From: Macrostomum hystrix
Taxonomy: Eukaryota > Animalia > Platyhelminthes
Reading direction: 5' to 3'
Assembly (NCBI GenBank): GCA_950097015.1
Contig: CATNEN010000015.1
Location: 372,001 to 436,000 of the forward strand
DNA: 64,000 nt
Shown here: piece by piece, positions 14,721 to 64,000 of the stretch
Layout of the letters: the number at the start of each line of letters is the position of its first letter
Numbering within the stretch: the first letter of the stretch is position 1
Made by a program: the position numbers and the translations under genes
The notes under the pieces: model-generated
What the model was told of the DNA's origin: nothing
Seen by the model: only the letters and a program-made list of their open reading frames with translations
Database searches by the model: none

Positions 14721-14996
14721 TGGGTGGATCGGCACTGGCTGAGCAAGCAAGTTGAGCAGTTTAGAATTAATGCAATGCTTTGAGCGATAGTGGCTACAAT
14801 AGCTGCGGAGACGGCATCCCGGAGTCTCAAGCAGCTGTCGGTATAACTGTGAGCAGTTCTGAGCTCACAGGGCGGGTCCAGGAAGGTGTTGACGCAGGTT
14901 GCGCTGTGGTTAGCAGCTGCTGCGCTCGCCAGTTTTATGACGGCAATAACTTTCAGAGCGGCAATTTCAGCCAGAGTCAGGAGGGTAGCTGGCGGA

Positions 14997-29851: not shown

Positions 29852-30285
29852 CTAAACTTCGGTTTCGTCAACGGGATCTGCCTGGCTGGCCGACGAAGTG
29901 CCAGAACCGGCGCTTCCAATCCTTCGCGTGACGATGCGGTCTCCCTTAGCAACAATTCGGTCAGCTGGCCAGGCCTCCAGCCTCTCTTGCAGATTGAATT
30001 CCTTGGCGGCCTCATGAGTAGACGTGGCTGGTTCTACAGCAGATTCAGCGCTCCAGGCCTCCCGAGACCGCGGAACTTCCGACACCTGCTGAGCCTCAGA
30101 GGCGGGCTGGATCACTCGGGATTTTCTAGAATTCAGGTTTGATCAGGGTCAATGGTTTGTTACACTTTGACAAACTCAATGCACAGTGAAAGTTACCGCA
30201 GGTTTCTCCGCACGAAGATGGTGGCAAGGACGAGGCCGACTAGAGCAAAAGCCACGCCTAAGGAGATGACTGTTGGCATCATCCA
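29852..30285 (-). CDS. Giant protein: transmembrane helix, basic stop-transfer segment and about 95-aa cytoplasmic tail
   Basis: WMMPTVISLGVAFALVGLVLATIFV followed by RRNLR|KSR; the tail ends ...DPVDETEV*. Confidence 0.85.
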
Positions 30286-33200
30286 GTTCATTCCGGATCC
30301 TTCGATCGGAGGCTCGCATTTTGAACCTGGCGGACAGATGCAGGAGGCGCTGCCGCCGCTGCCCTCACTGCAGATGAGCGGCGGGTCGCAGCGCAGCAGG
30401 GCGCAAGGGTCGGCGCGCTCGCAGCGGTCTCCCAGCCAGCCAGCGGGGCAGCCGCACCAGTAGCCTTCAAAGCCGTCGGCGCGACGATCATCGAGGCAGG
30501 AGGGGTCCCACTCGGGTCCGCGGCAGGTGCCATTGTTAAGGCACGGCATGGCCAGCAATGCCATGGTGACTTCAACAACCTCGGAGCCCCTGATCGAGCC
30601 ATCGAGTTCGAACACGCCAGCGAACTCAAAGCTGTAGCGGCCGTAGCCGTGACTCATCGGCCTGAACTCGTACACGTTAGTGAGCCACTTTGCCTGCGGC
30701 AGGTCGTCGACACCGGGCGGTTTCTGGGAGCTCGATCTCAGCAGCACCAGCTCGTGACCTCCCGGACTACGGAGGCTTAGCTTGGCGGCTGCGCGAGCTG
30801 AGGTGGCGCAGCTGATGGCGAACTCGATGCCACTGGAGTCTGTCTCGTCCTGCTTGATCTGAAAGGAGAGAGATTGTTTAGAATGTTCCTTTAGAATTTA
30901 AATTTAAACTGCAGCGATGCTAAGTTTACAAGGAAGTGAATGGCCCTTTGGAAACCTGGCAGTACGCCCTTGTTGTTATACTAATTTGCGAGTAGAAGGT
31001 GTAGAGACTGTGCTCACCACAGTCCGAAGCGGTCCTTTCAGTGCCGTCCCGTTCTTTACGAACAGAATGTCAGTGCGATAGCGGCCGCCGCTCACGCTGA
31101 GCAGGAAGACTCCCTGAGTCTGCTGCGGTGGCACCCCGGATGGCGGCTTGTCGGTCACCACAAGTGGAAGGCTCTCCGTCCACTCCAGCTCGTCCGCGGT
31201 GGAGCTGGGCCGGTACACTAGCAGGCCGTCAGCTGACATGCTGGCCTGACCGAGCTTGGCTGTGCCTCGCAGCTCCCACACAATTGGATCTTCTTCGGGG
31301 TCGGTGGCCACCAGCTGCCGCTTGAACTCAACTGGAATGTTGTGAAAGATGAAAGATGAAAGATGGCGTCTTCATTTACGTGCACTTTAATCTGTTTACT
31401 CGTACATTCGTACATTCGTACTCCGCAGGGCTATCGACGAACGTCAGTCATTTCATTGAACTCCGTTGGCCAGCGAAAGCCGAGACCCTCTTTTTGGCTC
31501 CCAAATTTTTCAACCTAGCTCGCTGACTGGCTGCTCAGTTCTCAGTGACCTTTCCCCTCCAGCAACTGTCACTTGTCTGACCCTGCATCTTAGCCGTACC
31601 GCTCCGTCATACTTGGCTTTTTTAAATTAAGTACGCGACCACAATTCCTATCTGCGCCACAACAGCATTGCAGATTGCAGAGCCTTACCAACAGCATCTT
31701 CCGGCGAGCTGAAGTTGGCGAACAGGTCGGACTGAATCACTGGCGCTGAGTTGTAGGGCGACTTAGCGATGCTGCACATGGCGAACATTCGCTCCTGCGT
31801 CAGCGTGACAGCCAGCGCTTCGCCTGGGGCTGAGTCGAAAATTCCGGCCAGCTGCCAGACTTGGCTGTCTGCAAGCGTGTAAAGCAGTTTTGGCGCTGTA
31901 ATTTTCGATAATTTGAAGCGAATATTCATTAGTACTTACCTGTGTCCCAGTAAATAAGACTGTCCACTACATCCTGCTCAGGGTCAGCGCTCCGGCGCTC
32001 TCGATTAGCAGCCAGCTGCTGATGAGGCTTCACCTGCAGCTCGATGCTGGCTCTGCCGACCGGCGAGATCGCGAAGGTGCTGCCGAATTCTCGAATGCGG
32101 CGAGTCAAGAGGCGCGCGGTGCGGTGCTTCGTCCACTCCGGGTGCACAATGTACGGTTTGTAGGAAGCCGCTGCCGATGAGTCGTACTCCTCCTTAGTTC
32201 GCTCGTCTGTCAGCTGCTCGAAGTACAAGGATGTGCCATCAGGATAGTCGCCGATAGCTCTGACCTCCGGCATGCCAAGCCGTTCGGAGCTGAACTTCGC
32301 AGGCAGGGCTTGCGACTTCAGGCGAGAAATCTGAATGACGAGACGGTCATCGGGCACAATGGTCTGCTTACTGAGCGTTCGATTAGCGCACACGTAAGCC
32401 TTCGTGCAGGCCTGGAGCTTGATGAATATCGTCCTTGGGGATGAGAAGAGTGATGGTGTTCGGTTAACAAAATCTGAAATTGCAGACCCACTTTATATGG
32501 CAGATAAGAAATAGACCATTCTGTCTACTGCTTACTTTCCAGGCTCCAAGTAAAACCTATTTTTGGTGGAATCTGTGCTAATGTTTCTCCTTAGGCTTGA
32601 TAATGTGATGTTGTGCTCAGAGTCATCTACACCGTTCCATTGGATGGTATTGTTCTTGATCAGCACTGTGACAGATGTATCTGAGTCGTTAGCTTTTGGC
32701 GCAGGAATGCACGATAATACGTCATCGAGTCGGTTCTCAGCAGAGCTCACGCAAAGCTCTAAAATGGAACAACATTTAGAATTAAAATATGATCAGGACT
32801 AGGGATGTTTTCCATAAGAACTCCAGCCAAATAAATTGCTTCTACTCGCACCGTAGAAATTCAGCCTATCATCCAGCTTAAAGCTCAGAGTGGCGCCCAC
32901 GACGCTCTGGTCCGACTGCTTCTTTGAGTCTGGAGGCGATACGTCGAAGTCGAAATCCGTCACGCCGATGAGCGAGGAGTTCACAACACTGAGGTCTGGA
33001 GGGTCCGTCATCACGGTCAGCCCAACCTGGTCGTGGTAAAACATTGAAAGACCGGCGTTGTTGATCGCGCGGACACTGACGTAATAGGTCTCTCCGTTGA
33101 CCAGGGTGAGGTTGGTGTTCATGCCTGTCGGATTGGAGCCCACCGATTTCCACGTCTGCAGATTTGAGCTCTTTGGTGAAGTGCCTACCGCCCAGAAGAA

Positions 33201-45200: not shown

Positions 45201-48200
45201 AATCGGATTCATCAAAACCAGCTGCCGGGCTTCTCTTTTGTCTGCCGTGCGGTTCTGAAGCGAATTCTTCGCCCGAGTAAAAGCTTTCAACGAAATTGCT
45301 GGTGCTGTTTACATCCGGACCTGTCCACTTACCATTGAAAATGGTTTGGCATGCGGCTGGAACAGGAACCACCGTCATGTTGATGATCTGGTATTGCAGC
45401 AGATTGTTCGCTGAGTCGGGCAAAGTGAAGTAGAAAATGAGGTCAGTTTGATAGGCCACTATTCTGTCCCCTTTGATAGGCTCCCAAAGTCCAGGAATCG
45501 GAGTTGGCGAGTTTGCTGTTATGGCGCTTAAATACAAGTCCGCCGATATTCTCTCCGTGATGTCAATCCTAAATGATTTGCCATGGTGAAAGCCTGACAA
45601 AGTTGAGTTGAGGACATAGTTTTCATAGCCGAATTTAAATGTATCGTTGCATGGATCCAGCCGAAATACGAAATAGAAGTCTCTCATTGCAACTTCCAAG
45701 TCAAACTCGATGCAACACTTGAGTCCGAGGCAGTCCATATCGAAGGAGCAACTGGCCCCCTCATCCCTCCACAGGACGCTGTCATTGAAGTGCGGGCAGT
45801 AGGGACCGGGAGTCAAAATTACTCGCTCAATGATTCTTGTTTGATTCTCGTAGCAAGTTACGTTCGGACTGATGGTCGTCAAAGTTGAGTTGATCAGCGA
45901 GTTGTTGCACGGAACCTCCACCTCAACTATTACAGTTTCGTTATAGTACTCTCTGAGTGGGTACTCATCAATGGCGCACTTTGTGGAGCGCAGGAGGTCC
46001 GGGGACACCTTCAATCGGTTGATGATCAAGCCGCTCTCCACATCTGCCTGTGACGGGTACAGGTAGGTTCCGTTGGACAAGCACACGGGAAACTCGAAGC
46101 TCATGTCCTTGAGAATGTCGGCTTCCATCTCGCAGCTACCCAGCACAGTGGACTGGTCCGTGCACAATGTGGCTGTGAGGTTCAGCACCACGTGCTTGTT
46201 GTCCGCAGTCCGGGTCATCCTGTAGGATGCTGACATCCAGGGACCGAATCGGAAAGTCCTTTGCTCGTACCAGAGATCCCTCTCAACCAGTTCCTTGGAA
46301 ATGACTTGCCGCTCGAATTGATAGTTGAAGGTCATCGAGCATGGCTCAATAGCCAGCTCGGAGCGAAATGACCAGGTTCCCACAGTCAGGTTGACAGGCA
46401 TGCAGCAGCTCACGCCAACGCAGCCTTCTGTGAACTGGCACTGGACTCCCGGGGACATTAGAGGCATCGTGAGGTGCGGGCAGCTGTGCTGCGGGATGAG
46501 GCTGAAGTCGCAGGGGTAGCTGTACAGCATGGTGAGCACCGTGGCGTTCTCAGCCTCAGTCAGGCCCATGCGGTTCAGCAGCAGGCTGTTTGCTCGGGAG
46601 TAGGTCCCGTTGCTCACGTAGATTTCCTCATCAGGCCACATGAAGCCAATGTCGCTTGAGGCCGCACACAGCGGAATCTTCATCCAAAAGGTGTCAAGTA
46701 TGGTGTACCTGATGATGCTGTCTCCAACGCCGAGAAGCAGGTCCATGGACAGCACGAACTCTTTATAGTCGGGGGCAAGCTGCAACTGGTACTCCAACTG
46801 AACTGCCCTGCCGATTCGCTCAACGTGTTTAGTTTCAAAGTTGTGGCCCAGTAGTGTCTTGTTCATGGACCATCTCTCGAAGCCCACTGACAGCTGTAAG
46901 GTGCAAGGCTCAACGAACAGCCACAGCTTGAAGCTGTGCTGGGTAACTTTGAGATCGATCGTGTAGCAGCACTCCATGCCGGTGCAGGACTTGGTTGGCG
47001 TGCATCGCAGCTGATCTGTGTCCGTTTCATTGCGGTTGTGTTCTCTGCACCAGGACTCCCAGATGGACTTTTGCATGTAATCAACTTCGCACTGTTGCGC
47101 GTACATGCTTTCGAACTGCAGCCCGAGCCGGTTCAGAATCAGAGTGCTCGGAACATTTTTCAGGTCCTCGGGCTTGTCCACCGGTGGCCAGAGTAGTCGG
47201 CCGCCGTCACAGATGGGCAGGTAGAAGAAGGTGGGCCGCAGGATGTCTATCGGCGCTTGGCACGCTTCGCCTTCCTCCAGACACAGGATGTAGCCGGCTG
47301 AGATCAGGGCACCGCTGCCTGAGAAGTGGCTATTCACCTCGTAGAACAGCTTCAGAGACGGGGATACTGCCACCTCGTGCCGAGTGTCTGAGAGGGATGG
47401 CGGGTGGAAGAGACTCGCATGATGTGGGAAAAGTTCTCAAACAGTGACCTAAAATACATACAGGCCTTTTTAGCCAGTCATCTTGCCAAGCTCTTACCGA
47501 ACTCGAGCGTTAAGAACGAAGCGGTGACATGCCATTTCTCGAATGTGATGGAGAACTCAAACTGACAGACATCTACGAAGACGCTGACATGGAATGCTCG
47601 CGACACCACCATGAGATCCGTGTTCTGGCAGCAGACAACTCCGACGCAGCTTGAGTGCAAGACGCACACGGACCTGGGATCCGCGGCCTGCACGTCCACC
47701 TTGTCTTGGAATGGACACTGGGTCTTGTCTGGGATCGTGAGGGAGGAGTTGTAGCACTGGCTGTCCCTGAGAGTCGCAGGTTCCAGCTTCAGCCGGGTAA
47801 CAATCAGGCCGCTCACCGTGTCGATTTGGTTCGGGGAGGGCACTGAAATGCGTCGGTAGGTATGCAGCTGAGTGCTTCAGAAGGCAAAGAATTGGCAAAC
47901 AATCAAGTCCAAAATACCTCCAGGCCAGATCAAAGTTCCGTTGAAGCAGGCGGTAATTGACAGGTGTAGATCTGCCAAAACCGGCACACTGTAGCAGGCG
48001 GTCTTGAGCGGGCACACCAAAAGCTCAAGGTTGAAAACAATGTCCTTCATCTCATTCGCCAGAGTCAGAGTGTAGGCCAGCTTTACATTTTCGCCAATCG
48101 GGTGCTCAGTCTTTCTGCCCCACACAAATCCAAGCAGAGATCGATTGAACGACCACTTCTCAAAGGTGAGTCCAAGCTCATAAGTGCACGGATTAATGTC

Positions 48201-51200
48201 GATTGACGTCTTGAAGGCCGCCTCAGCCACTTTCAGGTTGACGAGCGAGCAGCAATCCAGTCCCGTGCAGATGCCCACAGCTGAGCAGTAGACATCCCGG
48301 GTGTCTGGCGCAGTGACGTGCGGGCACTGGACCGAGGCCTGGCCAAGATCGGACCTCTGACACTCCCTCTCTCTCAGCAGCCGGATGTCAATGCCCAGCT
48401 GAGTTGCCAGGATTCCGCTCAGTCCGCGATCGACATTCGTCCAGTCAAGTCGAGAGCCATCTAAGCACACCGGCACTGGGAAGGTCTGGTCATCGAGGAT
48501 GTTCGCCCCTCGACTGCACTCGCTTCCGTCGCAGTACTCCAGAGCCATGCTGACGATGAAGCTTTGCAGGTGCGGTCCCCTGGCCACCTTGAAGCGAAGG
48601 ATCAGGCGGTCGCCAATCTTTTGCTCCTGCTCTTCATTCCAGCCAGTGAAGTCCATCAGAGTGCCGTTGAGGTACCACTTCTCAAAGCCTACTGAGTAGG
48701 TGTAGGTGCACGGATCGAACTGAATCCACGTGGAGAAGCTTCTGTTGACCAGCTTGAAGTCTACCAGCTGGCAGCATTCAACGCCGAGACAGCCGGGAGC
48801 CAGGCCGCACGTGGTGAAGTCGGGCAGAGCGGGCACATTCGCGTGCGAGCACGTGACGTTCCGGCGTCGAATCTCGTCCACGCTGCACTGCCGATCCGCC
48901 AGGAAGTTCGGAGACACCTTCAGCCGATTCGCAATGAGGCCTTTTGTGGCCTCTTCAACCGACTTTGCGTGTCCTGCCGAGTCCACTGAAATTAGAGTTC
49001 AATGGCTCTTAAACTTCTCAGTGACTCTCATTCACAATGCGCAGGCAACTCACATTCAGGCCACACGAGTCCGGAGCCCCCGCAGGCTGGAATGGGAATG
49101 ACCGCCCCGTCCAGCAGCTTGATGTCGAATGTGCATTGGAAGTCATAGCAGAACTCCACGGACAGTGTAGCCAGCAGTTGGCCGTCTGATGCTCGACCGT
49201 ACTCGAAATTCACTGACAGCGAGTTGCCGATCTTCTCTACGTACCTGCGACCTGGAATGCACGGGATTCAGAACTTTGCACTTTTTGCCAAGAGGACTGA
49301 CACAAGAGAAAACAAGCACAGCGCACCAATGTGATTGAGCAGACTGATGTTGAACCTCCAGTTTTCGAATCCCGTCTCGAACCTCAGACCGCACGGGTCG
49401 ATGGCAAGCCAGACGTGGAACTGCTTCTTGAAGGACAGCATCTGCAGGTCAATGCAGCAGTCCATCTCAAGACAGTCGTCGCTGATTCTGCACTTTGCAC
49501 CCTCTGGCAGCTGGGGCGGCACTGTGAAGTGGGGGCAGTTCCTCCTTGACACTGGAGATGACGTCACTACCGTGCAGTTCTCGGGTCGGAAAACTCCAGG
49601 AGGTATGTTTAGCCTCTTGAGAGCTATTTCAGCAGCGTTGTCCCAGATCTTGCTGCCGTCGACCTTGTCAAAGTCCCCTGGAAAAACCAAGTGCATTATG
49701 TAATATCCTGAAAGCAGTTATATAAGCAGAGAAAAATCTCTGCTGCTTACAGTCGATGGTTCCGTTAGCGTGGCACAGAGGCACCTGCAGCAACTGGTCG
49801 TTGAGAAGGCTGACCACAGTACAGGACTGCCCAGAGTCGCCCAAGCACAGCTCGATTCTCGCAGACAGAACAAAGTTCTTGTCGTCGGCTGACTTGTCCA
49901 GAGTGTAGATCAGACGCACAGCCTTGGCGATCTGCTCCCTCTGCTCAACGCCCCAGACAAAGCTCAGCAGTGTCCGGTTCAGCAGCCAGTTATCGAAGGA
50001 GATGGACAGCACCATCACGCAGGGGTCAACGAAGGCCCGAACCATGAAGGAGCGGCTCACGATGCCGAGGTCCAGACTGGCGCAGCAGTCCACGCCCATG
50101 CAGCCATCGGAGTGCACGCAGCGAAGGCTTTCCAGGCCCCCTGAGCTGCTCTGGATCGGGGGCATGTGGGGACACTTGTCTGGCTGCTCTGGCGCCAGGC
50201 TGCACTGGTTCGGTTTCAGGTATCTGGCCACGATGCCCAGCCGATTAACCAGCAGGCCGCTCACGCTGCGCTCTCCGATGCTCGGCCAGCTGAGGCCGCC
50301 TCCGGAGCTGCAGCCCGGAATGGGCAGCGCGGTGTTCTCCAGGAAGACGCGCTCGCTGCTGCAGCCGCCGTCCTGACAGATGGTCACGCCGAATGTGAAG
50401 ATGAAGTTGTTGAAGTCGGCGCTGCGGTCGAGCATGCTGCGAATCTTCACGTGTCCGAGCTGGTGCTCCGCCGGTCTGCCGAACAACCCGCCGTTTCCGA
50501 TGAGGCTCTGGGTGACGGTCCAGCGCTCGAATCCGAAGGTGTAGACAAACTTGCAGGGGTCAACGGAGACCCAGAAGAGGAAGTTGCGCCTGGCCACACC
50601 CAGGTTGATGTCCATGCAGCATTGGATGCCGGTGCACTGAGCGGTCAGCCGGCAGCGCATTCCCTCAGGCAGGCTGGGGATGATCGTGTGCGGACACGCT
50701 GTCAGGCTCTGCTGAATCTCATCGTCACTCAGGCTGCAAGCCTGCTCTCTGAGGATGCCTTGCTCCAGGTTCAGCCGGGTCAGCACTAAGCCACTGACAC
50801 CTTTGATATCATGGGACACCTGATCGCGCTCTGTAAATGTTTTACTGAAAATAGTTTTGTGTCTTCCTAGATGGTTGGATAGGTTGTCAAGGTATCAAGA
50901 ATTTCTTTATTACCAACTGGCCATGAAAGCGAGCTGTTGCTGAAGCACCGAGGGATCGGCATCAGGTAGTGGTTCAAGAAGTTCGTGTTGGGCAACTCGC
51001 AGTAGCCATCCTTGCAGATGGCCAGCTTGGCAGTCACAATCAGGTTCAGCAGATCCACCGACCGCGTCAAATTGTATCTGAAAAGCGAGACACAAAAGAG
51101 TTTCGTGCATTGTTAAAAAAGCCTTCCATAGATTTCTCAGTTAACCAATCGTATTAATTTAGTATAAAGCTCTAATTCATATACATTGCCTTAAGTCCTT

Positions 51201-54200
51201 TCTCGAAGTTCTACAAAGATTTCATCACCAGGTAATCGCGCACCTGAGCTCAACGGTTGAGCCAGCGATTCTCAGCAGCTTCTCCTGACCCCAGTCGAAG
51301 TGGAAGAGCGATTGGTTGTAGAAAAAGTTCTCGAAACCCAGGTAGAAGGAGTATGTGCACGGATCCACCAGTTGGGTGTAGAAGAAATGCCTCCGGTGCA
51401 CCTTAAAGTCCAGTTCCGTGCAGCACTCGATGCCTAGGCACTGGTCGTGAATCTTGCAGTTGTAAGGCTCTCGGTTCAGACGCAGGGTGACGTCGGCGAA
51501 GGTGCAGTGCGGCGGCCACTTCTTGGCGTAGAGCTCAGGGCGACACTGCGGCTGCTTGAGCAACTGACGCTCCAGCTCGAGTCGGTTCAGCAGCACCCCA
51601 GTGGCTGCGTCAACGGGGTTTTCGATGGCGCCCTCTGGGTTCAGCTTCGGCCATTGAAGGCTCCCGTTCGACAGGCAGAAGGGGATCGGGAGCCGGGCGT
51701 CACTCAGCAAAGGCAAAACTTCTTCACTGCACGTGGCGTGTCCGGCGCAGTTGGCAATGTGCCAGGCGAGCTCCAACTGGCTGTCGTGGTGCTTGTTGAA
51801 CTGCAGGTCGATGGACAGAGCCTTGCCAATCGGGATCTTCAGCCACTGTCCAAAGTTTGAGAAGACTGGCCGAGTGACTGCCCAGTTTTCGAACTGGACG
51901 CTGAACGCCATGGAGCACGGGTCCAGGCGCAGGGAGGTGCTGAAGCTCTTCTCCAGTGTCAGCAGCTTGAGCTTTGCGCAGCAGCGCAGCTCCAAGCAGT
52001 CGTCAGTCAGCTGGCACTGGACGGAGTCGGGCAAGTCGTGTGTCAGCCGGAAGTGCGGGCACCGAGGATTCGCCAGTCGAGAGCCGCCTGTCATGAGGGC
52101 GCAGTCGTCCCGCTTGAGGAAGTCCTTCTCCAGACCGAGCTTCTGCATGAGCATCTCTCTGGCCTTGTCCATCATGTGGTCGCGAATGTCGCTGGCGTTG
52201 AAATCTGGCCAGCTGAGGTTGCCCGCACCGGAGCAGAGTGGCACGGGCAGCCTCGCATCGGTCAGCAGGGCGATGGGGCTCGGCAGGCAACTGCCGTCGA
52301 GGCACAGATCGAATGCAGCGTCCAGGAACAGCGCGCTGTCATCAGGCTTGTGGTCCAGCTTGTACTTCACCAGCAAGTGGTCGCCGATGTGCTCAACTCT
52401 GCTCTCACCCCAGGGATAGTTCAGGATGGAGCGGTTGAGCGCCCAGTTCTCGAAGCCGAAACTCACCTGGTGCTGACAAGGGTCCACGAAGGCCCAGGCC
52501 GAGAAGGAGCGGCTCACGAATCCGAGGTCCAGATCTAGGCAGCACACGAGCCCCATGCAGAGGTGGTGCAGCTGGCAGTTCGCCTGCGGTGGCAGCTGCG
52601 GCTTGTCAAAGTATGGGCAGCTGTCTATAGGCGCGAGGGAGTTGCGGTTGCACTGGAACTGGCGCAGGAACTGCGGAGAGACGCCGAGACGGTTCACCAG
52701 CAGCCCGCTGATCTGCTTGCCTTCGAGATCTGAGACGGGAGTAGGTTGAAGAATGGCACTTATTCGCTGGCAGTTCAATGATGTTTGATTTCAGGATTCA
52801 AAGTACACACCTTTGCTAGGCCAGAAGAGAGTGCCGTTGGCAGCACAGCCGGGAATGGGCACCTCCGCCGCACTGAGCAGCCGCATCTCCGGCAGCCAAT
52901 GGTCGTCAAGCCGGAACTGAACAGAGCCCGAGATCAGGAAGTTCATGAGATCTGGCGTCTTGGACACGGTGTACCTGTGCGATAGTGGCAGAGTATTTGA
53001 GAACAGTGCTCAGGTTTAAGAAGCTTAGTTGACTTCACACCTGTTTAGTAGTGCTTTCTCTTACTTGAGCCGAATGGCCTTCTCAAGCTGCGCCAGTTGC
53101 TCAGTTCCCCACGGGAAGACCGTGAAGGTGGTGTTCCTGTGCCAGTTCTCGAAGCCGAAGTCGATGGTGAAGGTGCACGGATCTACGCGGAACCAGAACT
53201 CGAACGCTCGCTTCACGATCCGGAGGTCGAGGGTGGCGCAGCAGCGAAAGCCGGCGCACTCGGCGGTCTGGCTGCAGGCGATGCTCCCGTCCGGCAGCTC
53301 CGGCGCGCGGAAGTACGGGCATCGGCTGCTCGGCACCATCTCCGCCACCGGGCACTCGGAGGCGCGCAGGAAGTTCGGCGGCACCGACAGGCGCGTGGCC
53401 AGGAGACCGCTCAGGCCGCCCTGCCAGTCGACTGCAATTCAGGGGATGCTGGGGGTTGACTGCCGGCGACCACAGCCCCACTGCGATATTGGCACATTGT
53501 GCCCTCAACTCACCTTGAGGCCAGGACAGCGAGCCATTGGTGTTGCAGAATGGAACTGGCAGCTGGTAGTTTTCAAACAGCTGAACGCTGATGTCGCAGT
53601 CAGAGCCGGAGCAAATGGAAACTTTCATCGAGAGTACAAAGTTGCTGAGGTCGCTCAGCTTATTCAACGTGAACCTGCAATTTCAGAGCATCAAGCAATT
53701 GCACCTGATCATTGGCTACTTGGCGCACCCAGCGCTACTCACTCAAGCTGCAGAGCGCTGCCGATCCTCTCGACGTGCTTCACACCCCATTTGAAGGAAA
53801 GCAGCGAGGTGTTGAAGTGCACCTTCTCGAAGCCAACACTGAAGTCGTAGCTGCACGGATCGATCTTCAGCCAGAGGTGGAAGGCCCGCTGAAGCAGCTT
53901 GAAGTCGGCCAGCGCGCAGCACTCGATGCCCATGCAGCCGGCGGTGAGGCTGCAGTTCATCGAGGGCGGCAGGCTCGGCAGTGTGATCGTGTGCGGGCAG
54001 TCTGGAGAGGTGCGGGCAGGGGTTTTGAAACTGTGTGCTCATTGGCGGCACAATCTTGACACGTATGACCTTGGATGAAGATCTACAACTCACCGTTCTT
54101 GGGCGGCCAGATGTTCATTTCCACGGGCGAGCAGGCGGTGCCTCTCAGGATGTCGGCCGTGACCCCAACTCTGTTCAGGATGATCTTTGTGCCCGCGTCG

Positions 54201-57200
54201 TAAATTGACTTTACCATGTCCTGAGGATCGACTGAAAGGCGATGAAAGCGTTGGAAATGAGAGAAGTTAGGGTGTAACGATGTGAGTTTCTGAGAACAGA
54301 GCTTCAAGGCAGAGCGACTCACACTTGGGCCAGGACAGGGTGTTGTCGGAGCGGCAATAGGGAACCGGGAGAGGCGCGGCGTCGATGAGCCACGCGGTGG
54401 GCATCAAGGACAGGCCATCCAGCTGCGTGCCCACGCCGAAGCTCACGTCCAGCTCGTTACGATTGGTGCGGTCGAATTTGAAGCTGAAAGTTGATGTGTC
54501 ATACCTTGTGACTGCGCTTAACGAATGGTTGCGTCTGACTTTCGAAAATGCAACGGACTTCTTAATGCAAAAGAGTCCGAGGCACCGAGAAGTCGAACCT
54601 TACCTGAAGTCGATGGCCTTGCCGATCGTCTCTGTGTGCATGAGGCCCCACTTGTCGAACAGCGACCGGCTCCAGTTCCAGTTCTCGATGCCCACGCCCA
54701 CGGACAGCTGACACGGGTCGAACTTGGCCCAGGCGTTGTAGCTGTAGCGGAAGTTGCCCAGCTGCAGGCTGAGGCAGCAATCCACCTCCAGACAGGTGTC
54801 CTTGATGCGGCACTTCAGATGCTTTTCGCCATGGAGCCGATCAGAGAGTTTGAACAGCGGACAGTCTGAGGATTTTTTGGTTTGGCATTCGTGAGGTGCA
54901 AAATGCAACCGTTTCTGACGCCTGTGACCGGAGATCCCACATGCTATCTCCGAGACACCGCACCTCTGGAGCTCAGACAAATGATAATCTGGTTATTTGG
55001 AACTGCATGCAGGCCTGATCCCATGAAAAGGCCCTTCAAAACTCTTGGCCAGGACCCATTGCTTTAAGGGGGCAGGCATATTCGAATCGCGAGCAAACTA
55101 AATATCTAGCCTACTCACTCGACTGCTGTCGCGACGAGCTCCTCCAGGTGGATCCGTCTACGGAGCAGTTCTGCAGGCGGAAGAACTTCTTGTCCAGCCC
55201 GATGCGCTGCAGTGTGATCCCCATGGCCGTGTCCTTGATACTCTCACCAATGTCGCTTCCAAGGTTAATGAGGTCTGTGGAGTTCAAATGAAATTTTACT
55301 GTTTACTTAAATTCTAATTATCCCTGAAAAAAGTACTCGAATCAAACCTGAAATTCCGATGGATGCCTCGCGATTGCACACTAGCTGAGGGATCTCGTAT
55401 CCCTGCAGCACAACAAACTCCTGGCTGATGTCCTCCACCTTCAGCGAGATGGTCAGGTCAAACGTGAACACTCGCCTGTTGTTGTCCTTGGAAATCCGGT
55501 ACCTGTGCCGATTAGAAAACGATGCGCCGTCAGGTAATTGATAGAGTCTTAACAGTTATTGCAGAAAATGTCCCTCTTTGACCTACCGCATGACGAGCGC
55601 GTTTCCCAGCCTCTCGGTCTTCCACTGGCCCCAGTCAAACGTGAACAATGGCCTCTCAAACTTCCAGTTCTCCAGTCCCACTGAGAACTTGTAGTCGCAC
55701 GGATCTACGAAGGCCCAGGCCTTGACTGACAGCTGCTTGATCTTGAAATCCATGCTCATGCAGCACTCGATGCCCATGCAGTGCTGGTTGAGGTGGCACT
55801 TCAGCGGGTCCGGGATGTGCTGAGGCAGCGACAGGCCGGGGCAGACTGGAATGTGTGAGATTTCGGGACACTTCATCAGACTGCCATCACCGTTTCGCAT
55901 TGCTAAAAAGCCGAGCGGCAATGAGCAGCGAAAACAACTGCGAACCTTTGGGACTCTCGGGCTGGCAGTTCGAGTGCGTGGCGATGACGCCCTCCAGCCG
56001 CAGGTGCCGCAGGACGGCCTCGATGGCGCTCTCGGTGATGCTGCCGCCGAGCTCCTTCACGAAGTCGCCGATGGAGCCGCCAGGCAGACTGATGGACGCG
56101 TTCGGGTTGCAGATCGGAATCGGAATGGCGAAGTTGTTGAGGAAGGCCACCGGAGTCAAGGTGTCTCCTTCGATCTTCACCTGCAGATCCAGGTCTACGA
56201 AGAACAGCTTCTTCACGGGGTCTTTGTCGATCTTGAAGCTGGAAGCGGAATCAAAGATTTTTAGATTTGAGTTCAAATCAAACAAGCAATTCGCATCGGT
56301 CAACATGGCGTGCTGTCAGACCTCACGAAGATGACCTTGCCGAGGTCGAACGACTCCCTGCGACCCCAGTCGTAGCGGAAAAGAGACTTGCTCAGCGCCA
56401 TCTTCTCGAACCGAATCAGCAGCTTGTAGTCGCAGGGGTCGACGGACACGGCGAGCGCGAACGCCTTGCGGGCGATGAGGATGTTGAGCTCGGCGCAGCA
56501 GCTCAGCATCCGACAGTCAGCTGACAGGTCACAGTAGGTGCCCGGCAAGAAACCCGCCGGGGCGTTCGCCGAGCTCTTGAACAGCGGACAGTCTGGAGAG
56601 CGATTCGGTGTTTGATTCGACAGGAACAGAACATTTTCAATGAAGTCGAAGCAATTAAACAACTTGCCAATATGTGTAAGTACTTAGGCTACACCATCAA
56701 ACATGTGGACATACTCGTAATCTCTTTTTGTGCTGCAGCCCTTACCCGTGTTCTTATGGACGTTTTCTCCGGACATTCTTTTGCTCTCTGCCTCGCCCCA
56801 GTCGGCTAGCCCCACCCGGATTCGAATTTATCGATAAACCCCCCTCATCACGGCATGTACATCTCAACTGCACCCGTGCGCCTTCTTTCGGCCCTTTTGA
56901 GCTGTAAATATGAGTTCACGATCAAGGCTGCCCACACCCCTTGCTCCACGCTGAAACCCTGCTAAAGTTCGCCTGAGTGTCGTGATTTTGACATTTCTGA
57001 GTTGTGAGTATCATAAAATTGCCTCTCTGCTATTCCTTCAGGGCATCGGACGGGCAGCGCTTGACTGGGGACCTGGGGAGCTTCAGCTTCTCTCTGTAGG
57101 TGCATTTACATGTAGGGATCACAAAACTACTCAAATCTACTTGAGAGTTCATATGGATGAGGACTTACGGTTGAAAAAGCCGGTCCTGTTGTCGCAGTGG

Positions 57201-60200
57201 CCCTCGAAGTCGATGAGGTCGCCGATGCCCAGGTGCCTGAGCACGGCCTGGACGGCCTCGTCAGTGATCTTCTGCACGCCAGTCTCAGTCAGGTGCCTGA
57301 TGAAGTCCTTGACCTGGCCGCCACCAGGCAAGCTGATCGAGGCGTTCATGTTGCAGCCCACCTGCGGCACCATGGAGTGTTCGAGCAGCACGAAGTCTGT
57401 GCGAACCGAGTCCACCGTGAGGCTGAGCTTCAGGTCCACGATGAACAGGCGCCGGTCGCTGTCCTTGCGGATCGTGTAGCTGGAAAGCGCGAAATCGAGA
57501 CCATCATTTTTTAGCTCCGATTGAAAATATATTTCAAGCCAAGCAATTGAAGAATGCTGCAGTTAGACATTATACTCGCTGGTGTTCTGCTCACATGATC
57601 TGCAGAGGTGACCCCAGGTTGAACGTCTCGACCTGGCCCCACTGGTAGTAGTAGAGAGTCTGGTTGTAGTACATGTTGTTGAAGCCGATGGAGAACTTGT
57701 ACTCGCAGGGATCCAGCAGCAGAGACAGTTGTGCCGTCGGCTTGTAAACTTTGAAGTCCAGCTCTGCGCAGCAGGTAACTCCCATGCAGAACTCGTTCAT
57801 GTGGCAGCGCACCTGGTTGGGCAGTCTTGGTAGATGGAACACCTTGGGGCAGCCTGTGAAAATTAACCGAAGCTTTCATGAATGAAATTATGAAACTAAA
57901 TGCAACTGCTCTTGGGTAGCGCGCAATGATTCTCATAAAAAAATGAACGAAGCAACGCTCACGGCTATCCCAGCCATTGTTGAATGTGCTCGATGGCAGC
58001 ACGCAAGCTGGGGAATCAAAGAATGCGCGCTGCAGGCCAAACCTTCGCACCACTGCCTCCCATGCCGTCTGCACTGTCGAGTCGGAGGCCTTTTCGCCGA
58101 GCAATTTGGCGAAGTCGCCCAACGAGCCGCCGGGCAGAGCGCCGGTGAAGTTGCTGTGGCAGTAGGGCTGGGGCACCACCGACTCGTTCAGCAGCTGAAC
58201 AGACAACTCGCAGCTGTCGGTGAAGCAGACTGCCAGGCCAAAGTCCAGCTTCAGGAAGTCAGTTCTGACTCTGTCCACCGAGTAGCTGCAAATATATTTC
58301 GCGATTCGATCATATTCTCGATGTCCGGCTTGTGAATGGGACCAAGTGTGCTTGCATTGGACTTTGCCTATGTTTACGGTAAGTAAGCAGAATGGGACTC
58401 ACTCCAGCCGAACTGCCTTATTGCCGATCCACTGCGACTTTTTCTGTCCCCAGTGAGCTTCCAGCAGGGAGGTGTTGAAGTGCAGCCTCCCGATGCCGAT
58501 GGAGCTGATGTAGTCGCAGGTGTCCAACAGAATCCAGGCCTTGGCGTGGTAGTTGAGGAAGCTGAGGTCCAGTTTGCTGGTCTTAAATGCGAAGTCCAGG
58601 CAGCACTCGATGCCGAGGCAGTTGTCCGTCACTCGGCACTGCAGGTTGGACGGCAGCTGCGGCAGCCGCACGTGCGGACAGGCCGTGAAGTTGCTCATCC
58701 GTGCGCATCTGCCCTTCGAAAGGACGTTGGTGAGACCTGTCCTTGCGAGCAGGATCTCCGCGGCCTTGTCCAGCGCGGCCGGGCTGGAGGAGGTTCCGAG
58801 CTCCCGGAGGAAGTCCTCCAGCTTGTAGGTGTTGCCAGGCAGGACTCGGTGCCAGTCGTTGCCGCAGAAGGGCACTGGCACCGGTAGCCGGTTGAGCACG
58901 CTGATGTAGTCCAGGAGGCAGGATGAGGAGCCCGGACAGATGGCCAGCTGGAGGCTGAACAGCGGCGCATCCGGGCTGTCTGGATTCTCTTCGAATCGGT
59001 ACCTGGCGGATTGATTGTTATCAGCAAGCTTTGTTGGATTGATCAGTCACTCAAGAGTCGATTGGCTGGCTTTGTGAAGGCCTGAAGCCAATAAAATTTA
59101 CGCTTTTAACCAAAAAAGTACGACATTGCTTACTTCAGCTTAAGAGCTCCGACATTCTGTGAAAACTCCTGGCCGTAGGGAATCGCGAACAGGATCTTGT
59201 TGAAGGTCAGCGAGTTGAAACCGAAACTAAAGGTCAGCGAGCAGGCGTCAATTTTTGCCCAGCCTGTAATGCGCATGGGACCATGAATTCAGCTATGGGT
59301 TGCGAAAATGTGAAATTTGTGTGCAAAAGCTACACACCTTGCAAGTACTTGGCAATTTCGAATCCCCTGATCGAAGCCTCGAGTCCCATGCAGCACTCGA
59401 ACTTGGTGCAGTTCGGCGACGCCTGGCAGAAGACGCGACTCCTTAGCGCCTCTGGCAGCTGCGGCAGCTCCAGCTGCACTGGCCCGTTGCGGCACTGGCG
59501 GAAGTGCAGCTCTGCTAGCTCGATCAGCTGCGTCTTGTTGTCAGAGTCCACCACCTGAACTCCACGCTTTCGCAGCCCCTCCAGCAGCACTTCGTTCGAC
59601 ACCTTGTCTGGGAGTGAGCATGCCTTGGCGTTGAAGACTTCGGCTAAGTCCCTCAGACCCAGCTGCTGTAGCTGGTCCTCCCACCACTTCTGCATCACGG
59701 CGTTGATGGCTGAATTCGATGTCTTCTGCAGCAAAGACTTCAGGTGCTTCTTGTTCAGAACCTGCTGCCAGTTCAGCATGGGCCAGGTGACGATTCCGTC
59801 CTTGCAGATGGGAATCGGCAGCACGAGCTCCTGCAAGACCTGGATGCCAAAGGGGGTGAGTAGTCAGCGGCTTGTGTCGCTGCCTCACTTTCCAGTGGTC
59901 TCTGGTTTGTTCCTCCCTCCAAGTCATGATTATTTCGGGGCTTAGTTGGAGGATTGCGAAGTAGTGACTTGCGGAGATGCACCTTATTCTGTGCAACCAA
60001 AGCTAATTTAAAATAGCTTAACCCTTGACTTCTGCATGCCTGCTTGTGTGTTTGTGTTTGTGCGTTGGGCAGGGTGTGAGGCGTTGTATGGGGGTGGGGC
60101 GGGTGTGCACCAATGTGTACTCTCGTCACTACCATTCAGGCATCTAAGTCCTCCCCTGGTTTGGTCTGCTCTGTGCGTGTCCGGGCCTGGGGTGAGAGGC

Positions 60201-63200
60201 ACTACGGCTGCCGCCCCCTTCCCCGCTTGGCTTGCTGCTGAGGTGCCTGTGTCCAGGGGTCCAGATGGCGCGATTGGGACTCCCGCCTAGTTCGTCGGCC
60301 TGGGGGCATGCCGTTCCTCTGCCTGTGCGTCAAGTGCCCCAGGTCCCCTGCAAATAATTAAGTAAAGTAAAGACCTGGATGCCAGCGTCGCAGTTGCTGG
60401 TTGACGCGCACATGAAAAGGCGAAGGCTGAACATCACGCTGTCATCCGTCTTCGCGAACTGGTAGGACAGTTTAATCTTTCTTGTCAGAACGTCGAAGAA
60501 GCTCATTTCGTCCGTCAGCCAGATCTCTTTCTCCTCAAAGTCTGAAATATGCTTATGCACTTATTATGACTGTTTTCTGTTTCCTAGATTTGATTTGAAC
60601 AGGTCCTAAGTCGCATACCATTGGCTGAGAAGCTGTCTAGCTCAATCGAGTGCACGAAGCGGTTCATGTCCTTCAGCTTCAGTCCGAACTCCAGCTTCTT
60701 GCTGCTGCCGCACGGATCCAGCCGAGCCCACAGCTTCGCCGCCTTGCGGAACATGTTCACTTTGAGATCCAGGCAGCACTCCATGGATAGGCAGCTCTTG
60801 TCGAACTGACAGTAGATTGGCTTCTGCAGAGACAGTTGCATCAAGGGACAGCCTGGGCAGTACGGTTGGTATTTAGGTTAGTAAGAATGCTGGTGAAAAA
60901 AATGGGCATAGTATGCTGAACAAGATAGACTCACGAGAGTCACTCTGCTTCATGCGGTCAATAAGGCTGGCCTTGGGCATGACGTCCACTTCCTTTTGAT
61001 CGAAGCCCTTTTTAATGAGCTCGTTCCGTAGCTCCTCTTCGGACATCAGGTAGGGACTCTGGCACGGCTGGTCCTCGAGGACATCTTTCACCGACAGCAG
61101 CATCTGGTCGGTCTCATTTCGCGTTGACGCTAATATGTTTCTAACTTCCTCTGACTCAAGAAAAGCAACGACATGGGCCAGCCGCATTCGGCGTAGGTTG
61201 AACTTCTGGAATATCCGGTCCACTCCGAGCCTTTTCGGGAAATTTAGGACGCTGCTAAACTTTCTAAGGACTCTCTCGTTAGTGGTTGGCTGGGCATTGG
61301 AATTCCCAGTGTCCTCTGCAAACAGGTTCTTGTAGTCCGCCATCAGCGGTGCGATTGTTTCCTCTCTGGCCTCCCGCCGTGGGCTGTTATCGAACACCCA
61401 GCCATATCTCGTTAGTCTGGCTGAGAGAACCAGAAATCCCAGAACGTACACTTGGGCATCGCCACAGTAGGGCACCCAGTTGGACAAGGTAATTCCGCGA
61501 GGCTCCAGATACTTGCTGGCATCCAGGTACGTACCCGGGCCGGACCTAGCAGACATGTGGATGTGGTTGATGCACTTGCCCGTGTTGGCCGCAAAGCCCA
61601 GCTGGCCTCCAGAATTCAGCCGCACGCCCTCAGTTGCCTGGTTGTTGCCTCTGGCGAAGTCAAACACGGGCAGCTCGCTTTCTTGAAACCTGCCGTTGTC
61701 CATCAGGAACTTCACATTCTCAAATATGAGGTGAAACCTGTCCAGACTGAAGCCCTTCGGAATCACGACGAGCTGGTTGGGTCGCTCCGGGCCTCGGTAA
61801 TACTCGCCCAGGATGGGCACAACGATTCTCTGTCCCGGGTGGACCTGCAAGTCCACGCCCGGGTGAGACCACAGGCCGTCGCCATTCGCGGGAAAGAAGC
61901 CGTCGGAACCGCAGCCTGATCCGGGCAGGCGATAGGTGCGAGGGAACTGGGGATGCACCCGCGGCCCCAAGATGGACTCCAATATGGTACGGAGTGCGTT
62001 CCACGTCTCAACAAGACCATTGAAGGCCTCTTTTAAACCTCGGATGATTTTCTTCCAGATCTGAATGAGACCCTCGGCGATCCCCATCATGGTTTGAACT
62101 CGGCTCAGCGGTTCGATGAGGCTGCTCTCCACTCCTTGAAGAAGACCCGCAAGCTTTGAGAATTCCTGAAATTAATTAAATTGTTAGCTTGCAAACCTTT
62201 GTTTTAAAGTTCCAACATAATAATCGCCGCTCACAAAGAGCCAGAAGTACCTGGTCAGACACAAAGCCAGATGAGCGGTTTGTCCCAGCCAACACAGCCT
62301 TGGCTCTTCTGTCCAGTCCTGTGCGCATCGCCTCAGTGAACTCCGAATGAAGGCTGTCGCAAAGTTTGCCGATTTCCCACCAGAAGGTCCTGTCTTCTGC
62401 ATGAAAGAGTATAGGAATTGATGAGAGAATGTACAGCATTCAGCCTAGTCTCAAAGTCACAGCGCACTCACCGTTAGTCGTATGGCATGCAGCCTGCGTT
62501 CGATTCTGGCTATCGATGAGGCCCTGGACTGCTGTTCCTATTTGGTGGAAGGCCTTGAATGCATTCAGCATGGACTCTTTGGGCGAGCGATACAGTTTCG
62601 GAAAGATGTTCACTAAGAGATCCAGGCTCTCTTTCAGCTGCTTGCCAGAGACTGGCATCTGGTTGTTTATCGTGTCGAACAGAGTCTAAAACGGTGTGCG
62701 CGAGCGCAAGTGTGATTTCTGGAACTCTGAACAATTCTATGAGCTCTGCTCTAACTTTTTACTCCTTCTCTCACACCAAAATCTCTTCGGTCTGATGTGA
62801 GTCAATTAAATCGGAGTAAGTGCATGCGTGTGTACGAATGCGTGTTGTCGATAGACATACAACAACTACCATGATATTTTGAGATGGTATGCCTAGCAGT
62901 ATGAAATGTTGCAGATCAAGCACCGCAAACATTCCACTCACAATGTAGAAGTCAGTGGCATCCGCCTTGACGGTGCTGGACAGGATGAGAATTCTTCTGA
63001 GCACAGCTAGCGGTGGCTGCAGCTGCTCAGGCAGCTCCTGTGCGTCCAGCTGGGACAGGATGCTCAGCGCGTGGTCCCCTGAGTCGCTCATCTGCGCCAC
63101 AATCTCGGGCACTTTTCCGTTAAACTCGTCACCAAGTCTTTTTATGACAGAGAACAGCTGATCGGGATTCGTTGGCGCAAACAGCTCGCGGAAACCGTCC

Positions 63201-64000
63201 ATGACGGCGTTTATGCCCCGGTAGATGGCACCGATGGTGCGGTCGTAAAGCTTCACAAGTGTTTCAAGGTTGTAAACCCCCAGTTCTTTCAGGAAGTTGG
63301 TTTTGTACTCTACTCGGCCACTGAGGCACGCCTTGCCTACTATAAAAGTCGGATGGAAGTTAATGGCGCCCAGGTGTCCTTGGACAGTAGCCAAACCAAT
63401 GCACTTCACTTCAAAGTGGCCGGCGGACAAAGCTAGAATGAGGCGACAGTTGCTGGGATGAAACTCTGAGGGAGATTTCTAAGTCTTTTATGTGGTGATG
63501 ACTCACAGGTCTTGAGAGTTGCTTCGCTTAATAAATTAGCTCTAATCGTAGCGCCAACTTTATGGTCGCCAAAAAGTTTACTCCACTGGACTTGGGGCAA
63601 GTTCAGCGGCCAGTTGATGCCTTTCCACATCTTCTCCAGAAAATACGGGGCGCTCCGCTTTGACATGAGATGAGCCAGACTGCTGTTGGCGGACATTCTA
63701 CAACGATGAGTCCGGTTGAAACAGCATGCTCAGAGCATGAAATAGCTGCTCGCATTAAAAATATAACTCGTATATATGCAGGGGCTGAGCGCAGCATTTA
63801 GCGACAGTCGACCCACAGCCAGGGTAAATTGATTAAGCATCTGAAATGTCTCCCCGCGAAGCGGGCCTATTTTAGGTCAGAGACCTTTCCGCGAGAGTAC
63901 CGTCGGCTCTAAAAAATACTCTGTGATTTTCAGCGCCTACCCTTTGTTGATTTCACGATTGAGAGCAGCAAAGTCTTTCGTTCTGGCCGGATGTGACTCG
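29852..64000 (-). CDS. Giant multi-exon type I membrane protein, 5' end outside the window; at least 58 exons and about 8,610 aa within the window
   Basis: Hand-spliced GT-AG exons with phases consistent throughout (5'->3'): 64000-63941, 63697-63507, 63432-62942, 62685-62472, 62396-62251, 62165-60935, 60852-60619, 60541-60375, 59839-59338, 59263-59134, 59002-58403, 58285-57963, 57853-57595, 57479-57169, 56592-56322, 56238-55946, 55902-55587, 55502-55348, 55274-55119, 54865-54604, 54483-54323, 54231-54094, 54001-53743, 53674-53514, 53431-53065, 52974-52811, 52729-51244, 51077-50914, 50830-49751, 49677-49327, 49251-49054, 48985-47918, 47842-47498, 47387-44662, 44588-44322, 43776-43574, 43477-43138, 43044-42756, 41656-41504, 41424-40551, 40461-39347, 39255-38920, 38823-37865, 37779-37626, 37519-37210, 37124-36861, 36771-36638, 36543-36007, 35939-35413, 35325-33666, 33496-33288, 33203-32852, 32758-32536, 32433-31940, 31895-31689, 31331-31018, 30858-30197, 30125-29852. 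Repeat and domain motifs run correctly across the junctions. Individual boundaries may be off by a few nt. Confidence 0.88.
30300..30555 (-). CDS. Giant protein: two juxtamembrane EGF-like repeats
   Basis: PCLNNGTC...C...CGCPAGWLGDRCE and DPCALLRCDPPLICSEGSGGSASCICPPGSKCE. Confidence 0.85.
31018..31760 (-). CDS. Giant protein: cadherin-like Ig-fold module
   Basis: Spliced NSAPVIQ...PEDAV|VEFKRQLVATDPEEDPIVWEL...GQASMSADGLLVYRP...LVVTD resembles the cadherin-like NxxP...ED...ATDxDxD signature. Confidence 0.7.
32430..43300 (-). CDS. Giant protein: about 15 FN3/Ig-like beta-sandwich modules, interrupted by a PAN domain and a non-FN3 insert
   Basis: Recurrent motifs D(T/L/N)TPP, V.DG, W.GF.DPES.I..Y.WA(I/V)GT and L..G..YY..V.A.N (e.g. 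IDLTPP, VDNTPP, VDRTPP, FDSTPP, IDDTPP, FDNNPP, IDTTPP). Confidence 0.8.
41320..41656 (-). CDS. Giant protein: PAN/apple-like domain split over a 153-nt exon (41656-41504) and the next exon
   Basis: Spliced ...SQMCAEDCVKQGDKCRAFNYH|FVNRLCELSHEMIGHRSRLSDSYGFAYYER fits the PAN pattern C..C....C..F.Y.....C.L......YY. The small exon is absent from the ORF track. Confidence 0.8.
41760..41802 (-). mobile_element. Second, headless copy of the SINE-like body seen at 21695-21738, inside an intron
   Basis: Reverse complement GTGGCATACCCCAGTCCACGGACTGAACAGCTGTACACAGCCT versus GTGGCGTCCCTCCAGTCCATGGACTGAACAGCCGTACGCAGCCT, 38/44 identical. Confidence 0.65.
45290..60852 (-). CDS. Giant protein: tandem array of 21 cysteine-patterned repeats (about 175-200 aa each)
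   Basis: Consensus L..RL......C...CP...P.LP...C.....C.G(I/V).CC..(L/V)D.....F..W..(V/L)DPC...F..GFE.W..N.(S/T)L..F.WG....E.IG..L.L.Y........F.......C....C.......LP(I/V)P.C..NG.L.WP. The CxxxxCC...(D/N/E)(P/A/T/V)C core was counted 21 times. Confidence 0.9.
59835..60384 (+). mobile_element. Retroposon-like insertion (520-bp core) flanked by a 15-bp target-site duplication; coincides exactly with the intron at 59840-60374
   Basis: AAGACCTGGATGCCA at 59835-59849 and 60370-60384. The plus-strand 3' end has the A-rich repeated tail AAATAATTAAGTAAAGTA. Confidence 0.8.
61490..61930 (-). CDS. Giant protein: LECT2-like M23/LytM zinc-binding domain
   Basis: GCGSDG...HPGVDLQVHPGQRIVVPILG (HxxxD, His at 61863-61865), GQLGFAANTG...NHIH (HxH at 61557-61565) and DASKYL. 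This parallels LECT2 GCG...HQGVD...APFTG...HVH...DPTAYL. Confidence 0.82.
61960..63432 (-). CDS. Giant protein: beta-strand-rich segment followed by long amphipathic-helical (apolipoprotein-like) region
   Basis: Heptad-like hydrophobic periodicity, e.g. LYDRTIGAIYRGINAVMDGFRELF and IAEGLIQIWKKIIRGLKEAFNGLVETWNALRTILESILG. Confidence 0.55.

Follow-up and report, generated by a model that had tools for sequence, protein, structure and literature searches.

The gene and exon carrying the M23 domain

The window, which is the whole 64,000-nucleotide stretch of Macrostomum hystrix DNA analysed here, carries an M23/LytM-fold domain on the minus strand at 61413..61991. The domain was delimited by a family HMM, an AF2 model and PDB matches. 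It has family-specific N- and C-terminal extensions, and its structure-aligned core covers about 61494-61977. The range first given for it, 61490-61930, is on the minus strand within the open frame 60873-62132. The M23-bearing exon is located at 60935..62165 (minus strand; 1231 nt, 410 codons plus 1 nt), as defined by spliced contigs, introns and collinearity with amphioxus. It contains the M23 domain, preceded by a helical lead-in and followed by a linker and a SAP-like motif.

Spliced contigs from two public runs of one study (X2 and X4) align to the window in the blocks 60692-60851, 60934/5-62164/5, 62250-62396, 62472-62685, 62942-63432 and 63507-63697 with 0 mismatches, whereas DNA run X1 is contiguous and unspliced over the same 60692-63697 stretch. 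The introns around the M23 exon are 75–85 nt long, and the two that flank it are both GT..AG when checked on the minus strand. Therefore, the M23 domain is part of an expressed exon.

Another run, X9, from a second organism (B), gave a 267-nt contig at 61242-61508 with about 97% identity to the window. The amino acid was changed in four of the six checkable affected codons, all of which are in the linker after the M23 core. These differences were rejected as a signal of selection on account of their small number and their location outside the core. Farther along the gene, RNA contigs skip a 535-nt stretch at 59835-60369, which is bounded by GT..AG on the minus strand. The depth of DNA run X1 over this stretch is 16,000–52,000 versus about 96 around it, and this pile-up marks it as a very high-copy repeat filling an intron.

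Homologues were collected by an exhaustive HMMER search of 1.84 billion representatives, which returned 51 matches at E<=1e-3 (best 1.1e-16). Residues are numbered below by the 196-residue piece 61401-61988 of the window (minus strand). Five bacterial matches (P0004, P0010, P0024, P0029 and P0050) were rejected as unrelated, since they consist of tandem matches to residues 31–60 only. InhA-like MAM repeats were found in all three of these proteins that were scanned (P0004, P0010 and P0029), and the repeated weak matches of such tandem repeats push unrelated proteins into the match list. With these set aside, the matches with a source name are uncharacterised proteins, all of them animal. They come from gastropods (Haliotis, Elysia, Batillaria), bivalves (Potamilus, Mytilus, Pecten), an annelid (Owenia) and cephalochordates (three Branchiostoma species and a Branchiostoma hybrid). 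The remaining family matches are short fragments that carry no source name and come from assemblies of metagenomes and read archives.

The long members of the family share one architecture, with Vitellogenin_N at about residues 100–580 (Pfam), M23 at about 1010–1190 (phmmer and family HMM) and SAP at about 1300–1600. Pfam itself calls M23 in one of these long members, P0007. In the amphioxus protein P0053, Pfam places Vitellogenin_N at 106–580 and SAP at 1301–1332. The whole M23 exon of the window, including the SAP-like motif, is collinear with P0053 (E 7e-44), and it is also collinear with P0009 from Potamilus (E 2e-29). Judged by these sequences, the giant LLTP-M23-SAP family is old and bilaterian, with M23 at a fixed internal position.

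The window follows the same order along its minus strand. The upstream open frame 62774..63478, which holds the exon 62942-63432, corresponds to the C-terminal region of the lipid-transfer (LLTP) module. It aligns to residues 666–839 of P0053 (E 3e-17), which places the lipid-transfer module proper beyond the end of the window. Downstream of the M23 core, a SAP-like helix-hairpin (MSEEELRNELIKKGF...LIDRMKQ) at 60945..61052 (minus strand) aligns to the Pfam SAP stretch of P0053 (1301–1332). Pfam made no SAP call at this position in the window copy. The same hairpin also aligns to the Pfam SAP stretch of Potamilus P0009; it sits in the same exon as M23, and the remainder of the protein is predicted to be extracellular.

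About 20 tandem Cys-rich beta-type repeats with a C-x-CC-x-DPC pattern occupy 45290-60852 (minus strand). They gave no Pfam match. Stretches of an L-x-x-R-L-G/N-hairpin type, similar to the SAP-like one, recur ahead of each repeat. The amphioxus protein P0058 matches the repeats at one place only, which suggests an expansion of the array in this lineage. Farther on, at 32800-41460 (minus strand), there are many beta domains in a row, connected by D-x-T-P-P linkers; the only Pfam matches there, to fn3 and Ig-like domains, are weak.

The last large open frame, 30196..30897 (minus strand), translates to an EGF-like region, a hydrophobic transmembrane segment (VISLGVAFALVGLVLATIFV) and then RRNLR. 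It has a weak Pfam EGF match and aligns to the C-terminal part of P0058, which also bears M23 (E 7e-14). The order in the window, from the LLTP C-terminal region through M23, the SAP-like motif and the Cys-rich repeats to the EGF-containing C-terminus, thus matches the order in the family. The best reading of the sequence, with every search made on single exons, is that one giant type I membrane protein is encoded across the window, and the M23-bearing protein would be extracellular. The spliced contigs and the collinearity with amphioxus place the domain in a multi-exon gene with a C-terminal transmembrane segment, and the original prediction that it is embedded in a giant membrane protein holds. 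A separate open frame of 788 codons at 12384-14750 (minus strand) has an amiloride-sensitive sodium channel (ASC) domain (Pfam, E 3.7e-25).

Evidence for the M23 fold

The window translation contains the HxxxD motif in ...LPGSGCGSDGFFPANGDGLWSHPGVDLQV... and the HxH motif in ...GKCINHIHMS..., and the distance between them is about 95 residues, which is the spacing of M23 peptidases. Two motifs of this kind could match by chance in a protein that has no M23 domain. The window copy taken alone leaves room for such an explanation, as Pfam gave no PF01551 match even at E<=10, either with the whole exon or with the domain alone, and the single-sequence AF2 model had a pLDDT of 29. Its best PDB sequence match was an M23 peptidase, with an E value of 0.066. 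A language-model look-up, which serves as a lead only, gave M23 clusters as neighbours.

The family as a whole argues strongly against a chance match. An alignment of 18 domain copies from the exhaustive search (A1) was used for profile and structure comparisons. PF01551 was matched by 15 of the 18 copies, with a best E value of 2.1e-12, and automatic annotation had already marked PF01551 in some homologues. Searched against the PDB, the A1 profile matched LECT2 (E 6e-6) and LytM (3e-5), then SpoIIQ, LytU and others, and the M23 chains ranged from 6e-6 to 4e-3. When A1 was supplied to AF2, the pLDDT reached 81.2 and the pTM 0.75, with block means of 92–94 around both motifs. The top 50 PDB matches of this model in Foldseek were all M23 proteins, and the model contains the M23 beta-sheet core. 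A six-frame scan of the window with the family HMM gave a match only at 61413..61991. An M23 domain at 61490-61930, as first proposed, is therefore established through the homologues, the PDB profile matches, the AF2 model and Foldseek, with the fold found in both profile and structure searches. The chance explanation, which fails against the family link to PF01551, the profile matches to LECT2 and LytM and a confident alignment-based model matching only M23 structures, can be regarded as refuted.

One hydrophobic stretch after the core, VYVLGFLVLSARL, might be taken for a membrane segment. This reading was rejected, since the stretch aligns to the family's conserved WxQECDDYK-xVY beta hairpin.

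Zinc-ligand and catalytic columns

H(x)nD and HxH are the two motifs of M23 proteins (PMC9662197), and the roles and ligand identities of the corresponding residues have been described for LytM and LECT2 (PMC9662197, PMC8039541). Both motifs are present in the window copy and fall in the LytM H210/D214 and H291/H293 columns. The HxxxD motif (HPGVD) is at 61851..61865 (minus strand) and supplies putative zinc ligands 1 and 2. By profile alignment, H42 is equivalent to LytM H210 and LECT2 H35, and D46 to LytM D214 and LECT2 D39. The HxH motif (HIH) is at 61557..61565 (minus strand), where H142 aligns to LytM H291, the water-activating histidine, and H144 to LytM H293, in the column of zinc ligand 3. 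This agrees with the claim that both motifs are intact. The zinc ligands of the window copy would be co-located, given the column equivalence and the fold match.

The second catalytic histidine is different. In the M23 consensus an extra histidine stands about 30 residues before HxH (LytM His260). It is absent in the window copy, where the profile alignment to LytM puts a glutamate, E90 of I-F-E-N-V, in this column (61719..61721, minus strand). The original prediction had read F-E-N at this position by eye, and the alignment supports that reading.

Across the family, the columns differ strongly in conservation. The D46 column is Asp in 47 of 51 copies and the H144 column is His in all 21 of 21. 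In the H42 column, no more than 20 of 47 copies have His; 11 have Asp or Glu, and the rest have Tyr, Arg, Ser, Asn, Trp, Val, Thr, Ile or Phe. The H142 column is His in 11 of 21, and the His260 column varies among T/E/Q/D/H/N/S. No full-length copy among the family matches of the exhaustive search has the zinc triad together with both catalytic histidines. H-D-HxH is kept together only in the window copy, Haliotis P0001 and Potamilus P0009. A candidate oxyanion column, presumed to be that of LytM Tyr204, has Tyr in 37 of 50 copies and, in the window, Phe.

Conservation is higher in other parts of the domain than at the catalytic residues. One such part is the family motif (I/L)FGPKxHxxFPR, which precedes the M23 core and in the window reads ILGPRVHPQFPR (61935..61970, minus strand). 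F15 and P16 of this motif are each found in 50 of 50 copies, G8 in 49 of 49 and H12 in 43 of 50, and the AF2 model based on A1 has a pLDDT of 94 for residues 11–20. H12 is thus more conserved than the first zinc-ligand histidine (20/47). The motif might cover the groove or be a source of a metal ligand. The C-terminal WxQECDDYK hairpin is also conserved across the family, as are three cysteines (C26 in 49/50, C139 in 21/21 and C175 in 21/21). This bias towards the cysteines and flanks indicates selection for the fold and its surfaces rather than for the chemistry of a peptidase. Such conservation is a hallmark of 'degenerate' M23 folds in the review literature (PMC9662197).

These patterns bear on whether the domain is a binding module or an enzyme. 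Protein-protein interaction is the reported role of degenerate M23 folds, and the zinc in LECT2 is structural (PMC9662197, PMC8039541). The loss of zinc ligand 1 outside 20 of 47 copies and the lack of any copy with the complete catalytic set argue for a non-catalytic binding or structural module. The window domain is therefore probably a diverged, degenerate M23 module that binds a structural zinc, holds a ligand or partner in its groove and does not cleave peptidoglycan; zinc binding and the absence of catalysis are both predicted from the residues in the aligned columns. In the proposed mechanism, the surviving triad (His, Asp, His) would bind zinc as a structural ion, and the M23 groove or the conserved flanks would hold a ligand or a partner protein, as in LECT2, EnvC and NlpD. 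This would take place in an extracellular lipid-binding giant protein, whose modules would run from vitellogenin-type lipid transfer, M23 and SAP-like through the Cys-rich repeats and the long beta-domain array to EGF and a transmembrane anchor.

The domain could instead be an active zinc metallopeptidase with altered chemistry, in which Glu replaces the second catalytic histidine as the general base. Such an enzyme might be part of an immune lipoprotein and hydrolyse bacterial cell-wall peptides, or it might process the giant protein in which it lies. The intact zinc triad and first HxH histidine of the window copy, Haliotis P0001 and Potamilus P0009 fit this explanation, a glutamate at the His260 position could in principle be a general base, and the match of the fold to active enzymes (LytM, lysostaphin) is as good as that to inactive ones. 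Binding of microbial cell-wall components is known from the lipid-transfer family, for example from vitellogenins and apolipophorins, which also counts in its favour. However, a conserved enzymatic role would not tolerate the variation seen in the catalytic residues: the M23 catalytic set is incomplete in every member of the family, zinc ligand 1 is gone in more than half of the copies, and the putative oxyanion Tyr is Phe in the window if the presumed mapping is right. An active enzyme with a glutamate base is thus conceivable for the window copy and finds no support as a function of the family, and on the whole it is considered unlikely. Between the two options first offered for the domain, a zinc-binding recognition module is favoured, and an enzyme with altered chemistry is disfavoured because zinc ligand 1 and both catalytic histidine columns vary.

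The window domain also differs from its relatives of known function. Bacterial M23B enzymes (LytM, lysostaphin, LytU and ShyA) have the extra catalytic histidine (LytM His260) and an oxyanion Tyr (PMC9662197), in contrast to Glu and, by inference, Phe in the window. The identity between bacterial M23B peptidases and the window copy is 12–20%, and no bacterial protein was significant as a true relative of it. The degenerate LytM domains of EnvC, NlpD, DipM, SpoIIQ, Csd2 and PrgK belong to the bacterial cell envelope, and most of them are without the zinc ligands, which the window copy keeps. The graded loss of catalytic and zinc residues within the present family provides a natural series for the change from a peptidase fold to a binding module.

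Origin, relation to LECT2 and possible release of the domain

Bacteria account for about 97% of M23 entries (PMC9662197), and the neighbours of the window domain in the language-model look-up and among ESM Atlas structures are bacterial or viral M23 clusters. Both observations would suit a recent horizontal acquisition of the domain from bacteria or phages in this lineage. In contrast, the domain lies in a spliced exon between GT..AG introns, every true match with a source name is from an animal (gastropods, bivalves, an annelid or amphioxus), and the homologues long enough to show it have the same domain position and the same architecture. No bacterial M23 protein was found at E<=1e-3 in the exhaustive search, the five bacterial matches being unrelated. 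With a spliced exon, an orthologous architecture in spiralians and a cephalochordate and no close bacterial match, a recent bacterial transfer is very unlikely.

M23 domains have been viewed as nearly all bacterial, and here a second, much older animal context is found: giant membrane proteins of the lipid-transfer type, in which M23 is a fixed module and which occur in molluscs, an annelid, amphioxus and Macrostomum hystrix. The Vitellogenin_N start is common to the homologues of the window gene and to LLTPs such as vitellogenin, apolipophorin II/I and apoB, and the upstream exon of the window is collinear with the stretch that directly follows this module. LLTPs described so far are secreted lipoproteins without M23, whereas proteins of the window type carry M23 and a predicted C-terminal membrane anchor. 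Full-text searches found no literature linking M23 with lipid-transfer or vitellogenin-type proteins.

The domain had been called LECT2-like. LECT2 is its best PDB match by profile and joint best by structure, but the margins over bacterial domains are insignificant. The LECT2 profile alignment extends upstream of HxxxD through a Cys/Gly-x-Tyr segment, whereas the LytM alignment does not. A word-indexed protein search returned no LECT2 sequences and no further homologues, either with the domain as query or with the family profile, including at E<=10. LECT2 (leukocyte cell-derived chemotaxin 2; PDB 5b0h, 9non) is secreted as a free protein of about 133 residues and has three disulfides (PMC8039541, PMC9662197). 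The window domain does not have this small free form; it is an internal module of a several-thousand-residue protein encoded by a giant multi-exon gene. The identity between the two is only about 19%. The three conserved cysteines of the window family have no obvious match to the three LECT2 disulfides, and the pattern differs as far as the alignment shows. The FGPKxHxxFPR and WxQECDDYK flanks are the window family's own. 'LECT2-like' is thus probably a fair description of how the domain works, in the sense of a degenerate animal M23 domain and not of established membership in a clade. The label stands in this general sense; a specific affinity to LECT2 does not follow from it, since bacterial LytM domains tie with LECT2 by profile and by structure.

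The family is a candidate relative for the question of where LECT2 came from. In a more speculative scenario, LECT2 and the M23 module of the giant proteins would share a direct common ancestor, with the free cytokine LECT2 as a detached copy, the zinc-bearing groove would be a ligand-recognition site, and a proprotein convertase would shed the LLTP and M23 portion. Taken together, this combination is improbable. If true, microbial or matrix peptides would be example ligands, and the shed N-terminal portion would be a soluble LECT2-like factor.

Apolipophorin precursors are cut by furin, and the position of the M23 domain upstream of the first furin site had been proposed to allow its release. 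In the M23 exon, a search for Rx[KR]R found only minimal RxxR strings, and there is no canonical furin site near the domain. The first confident canonical furin-type site predicted by a motif scan of the minus-strand frames, RQKR followed by S (HGRQKR, then SP), is at 45232..45243 (minus strand), and its position near 45243 is 16.6 kb downstream of the M23 domain on the DNA. Release of the domain by furin would thus depend on cleavage at a distant site. The same scan predicts a second confident canonical site at about 32003.
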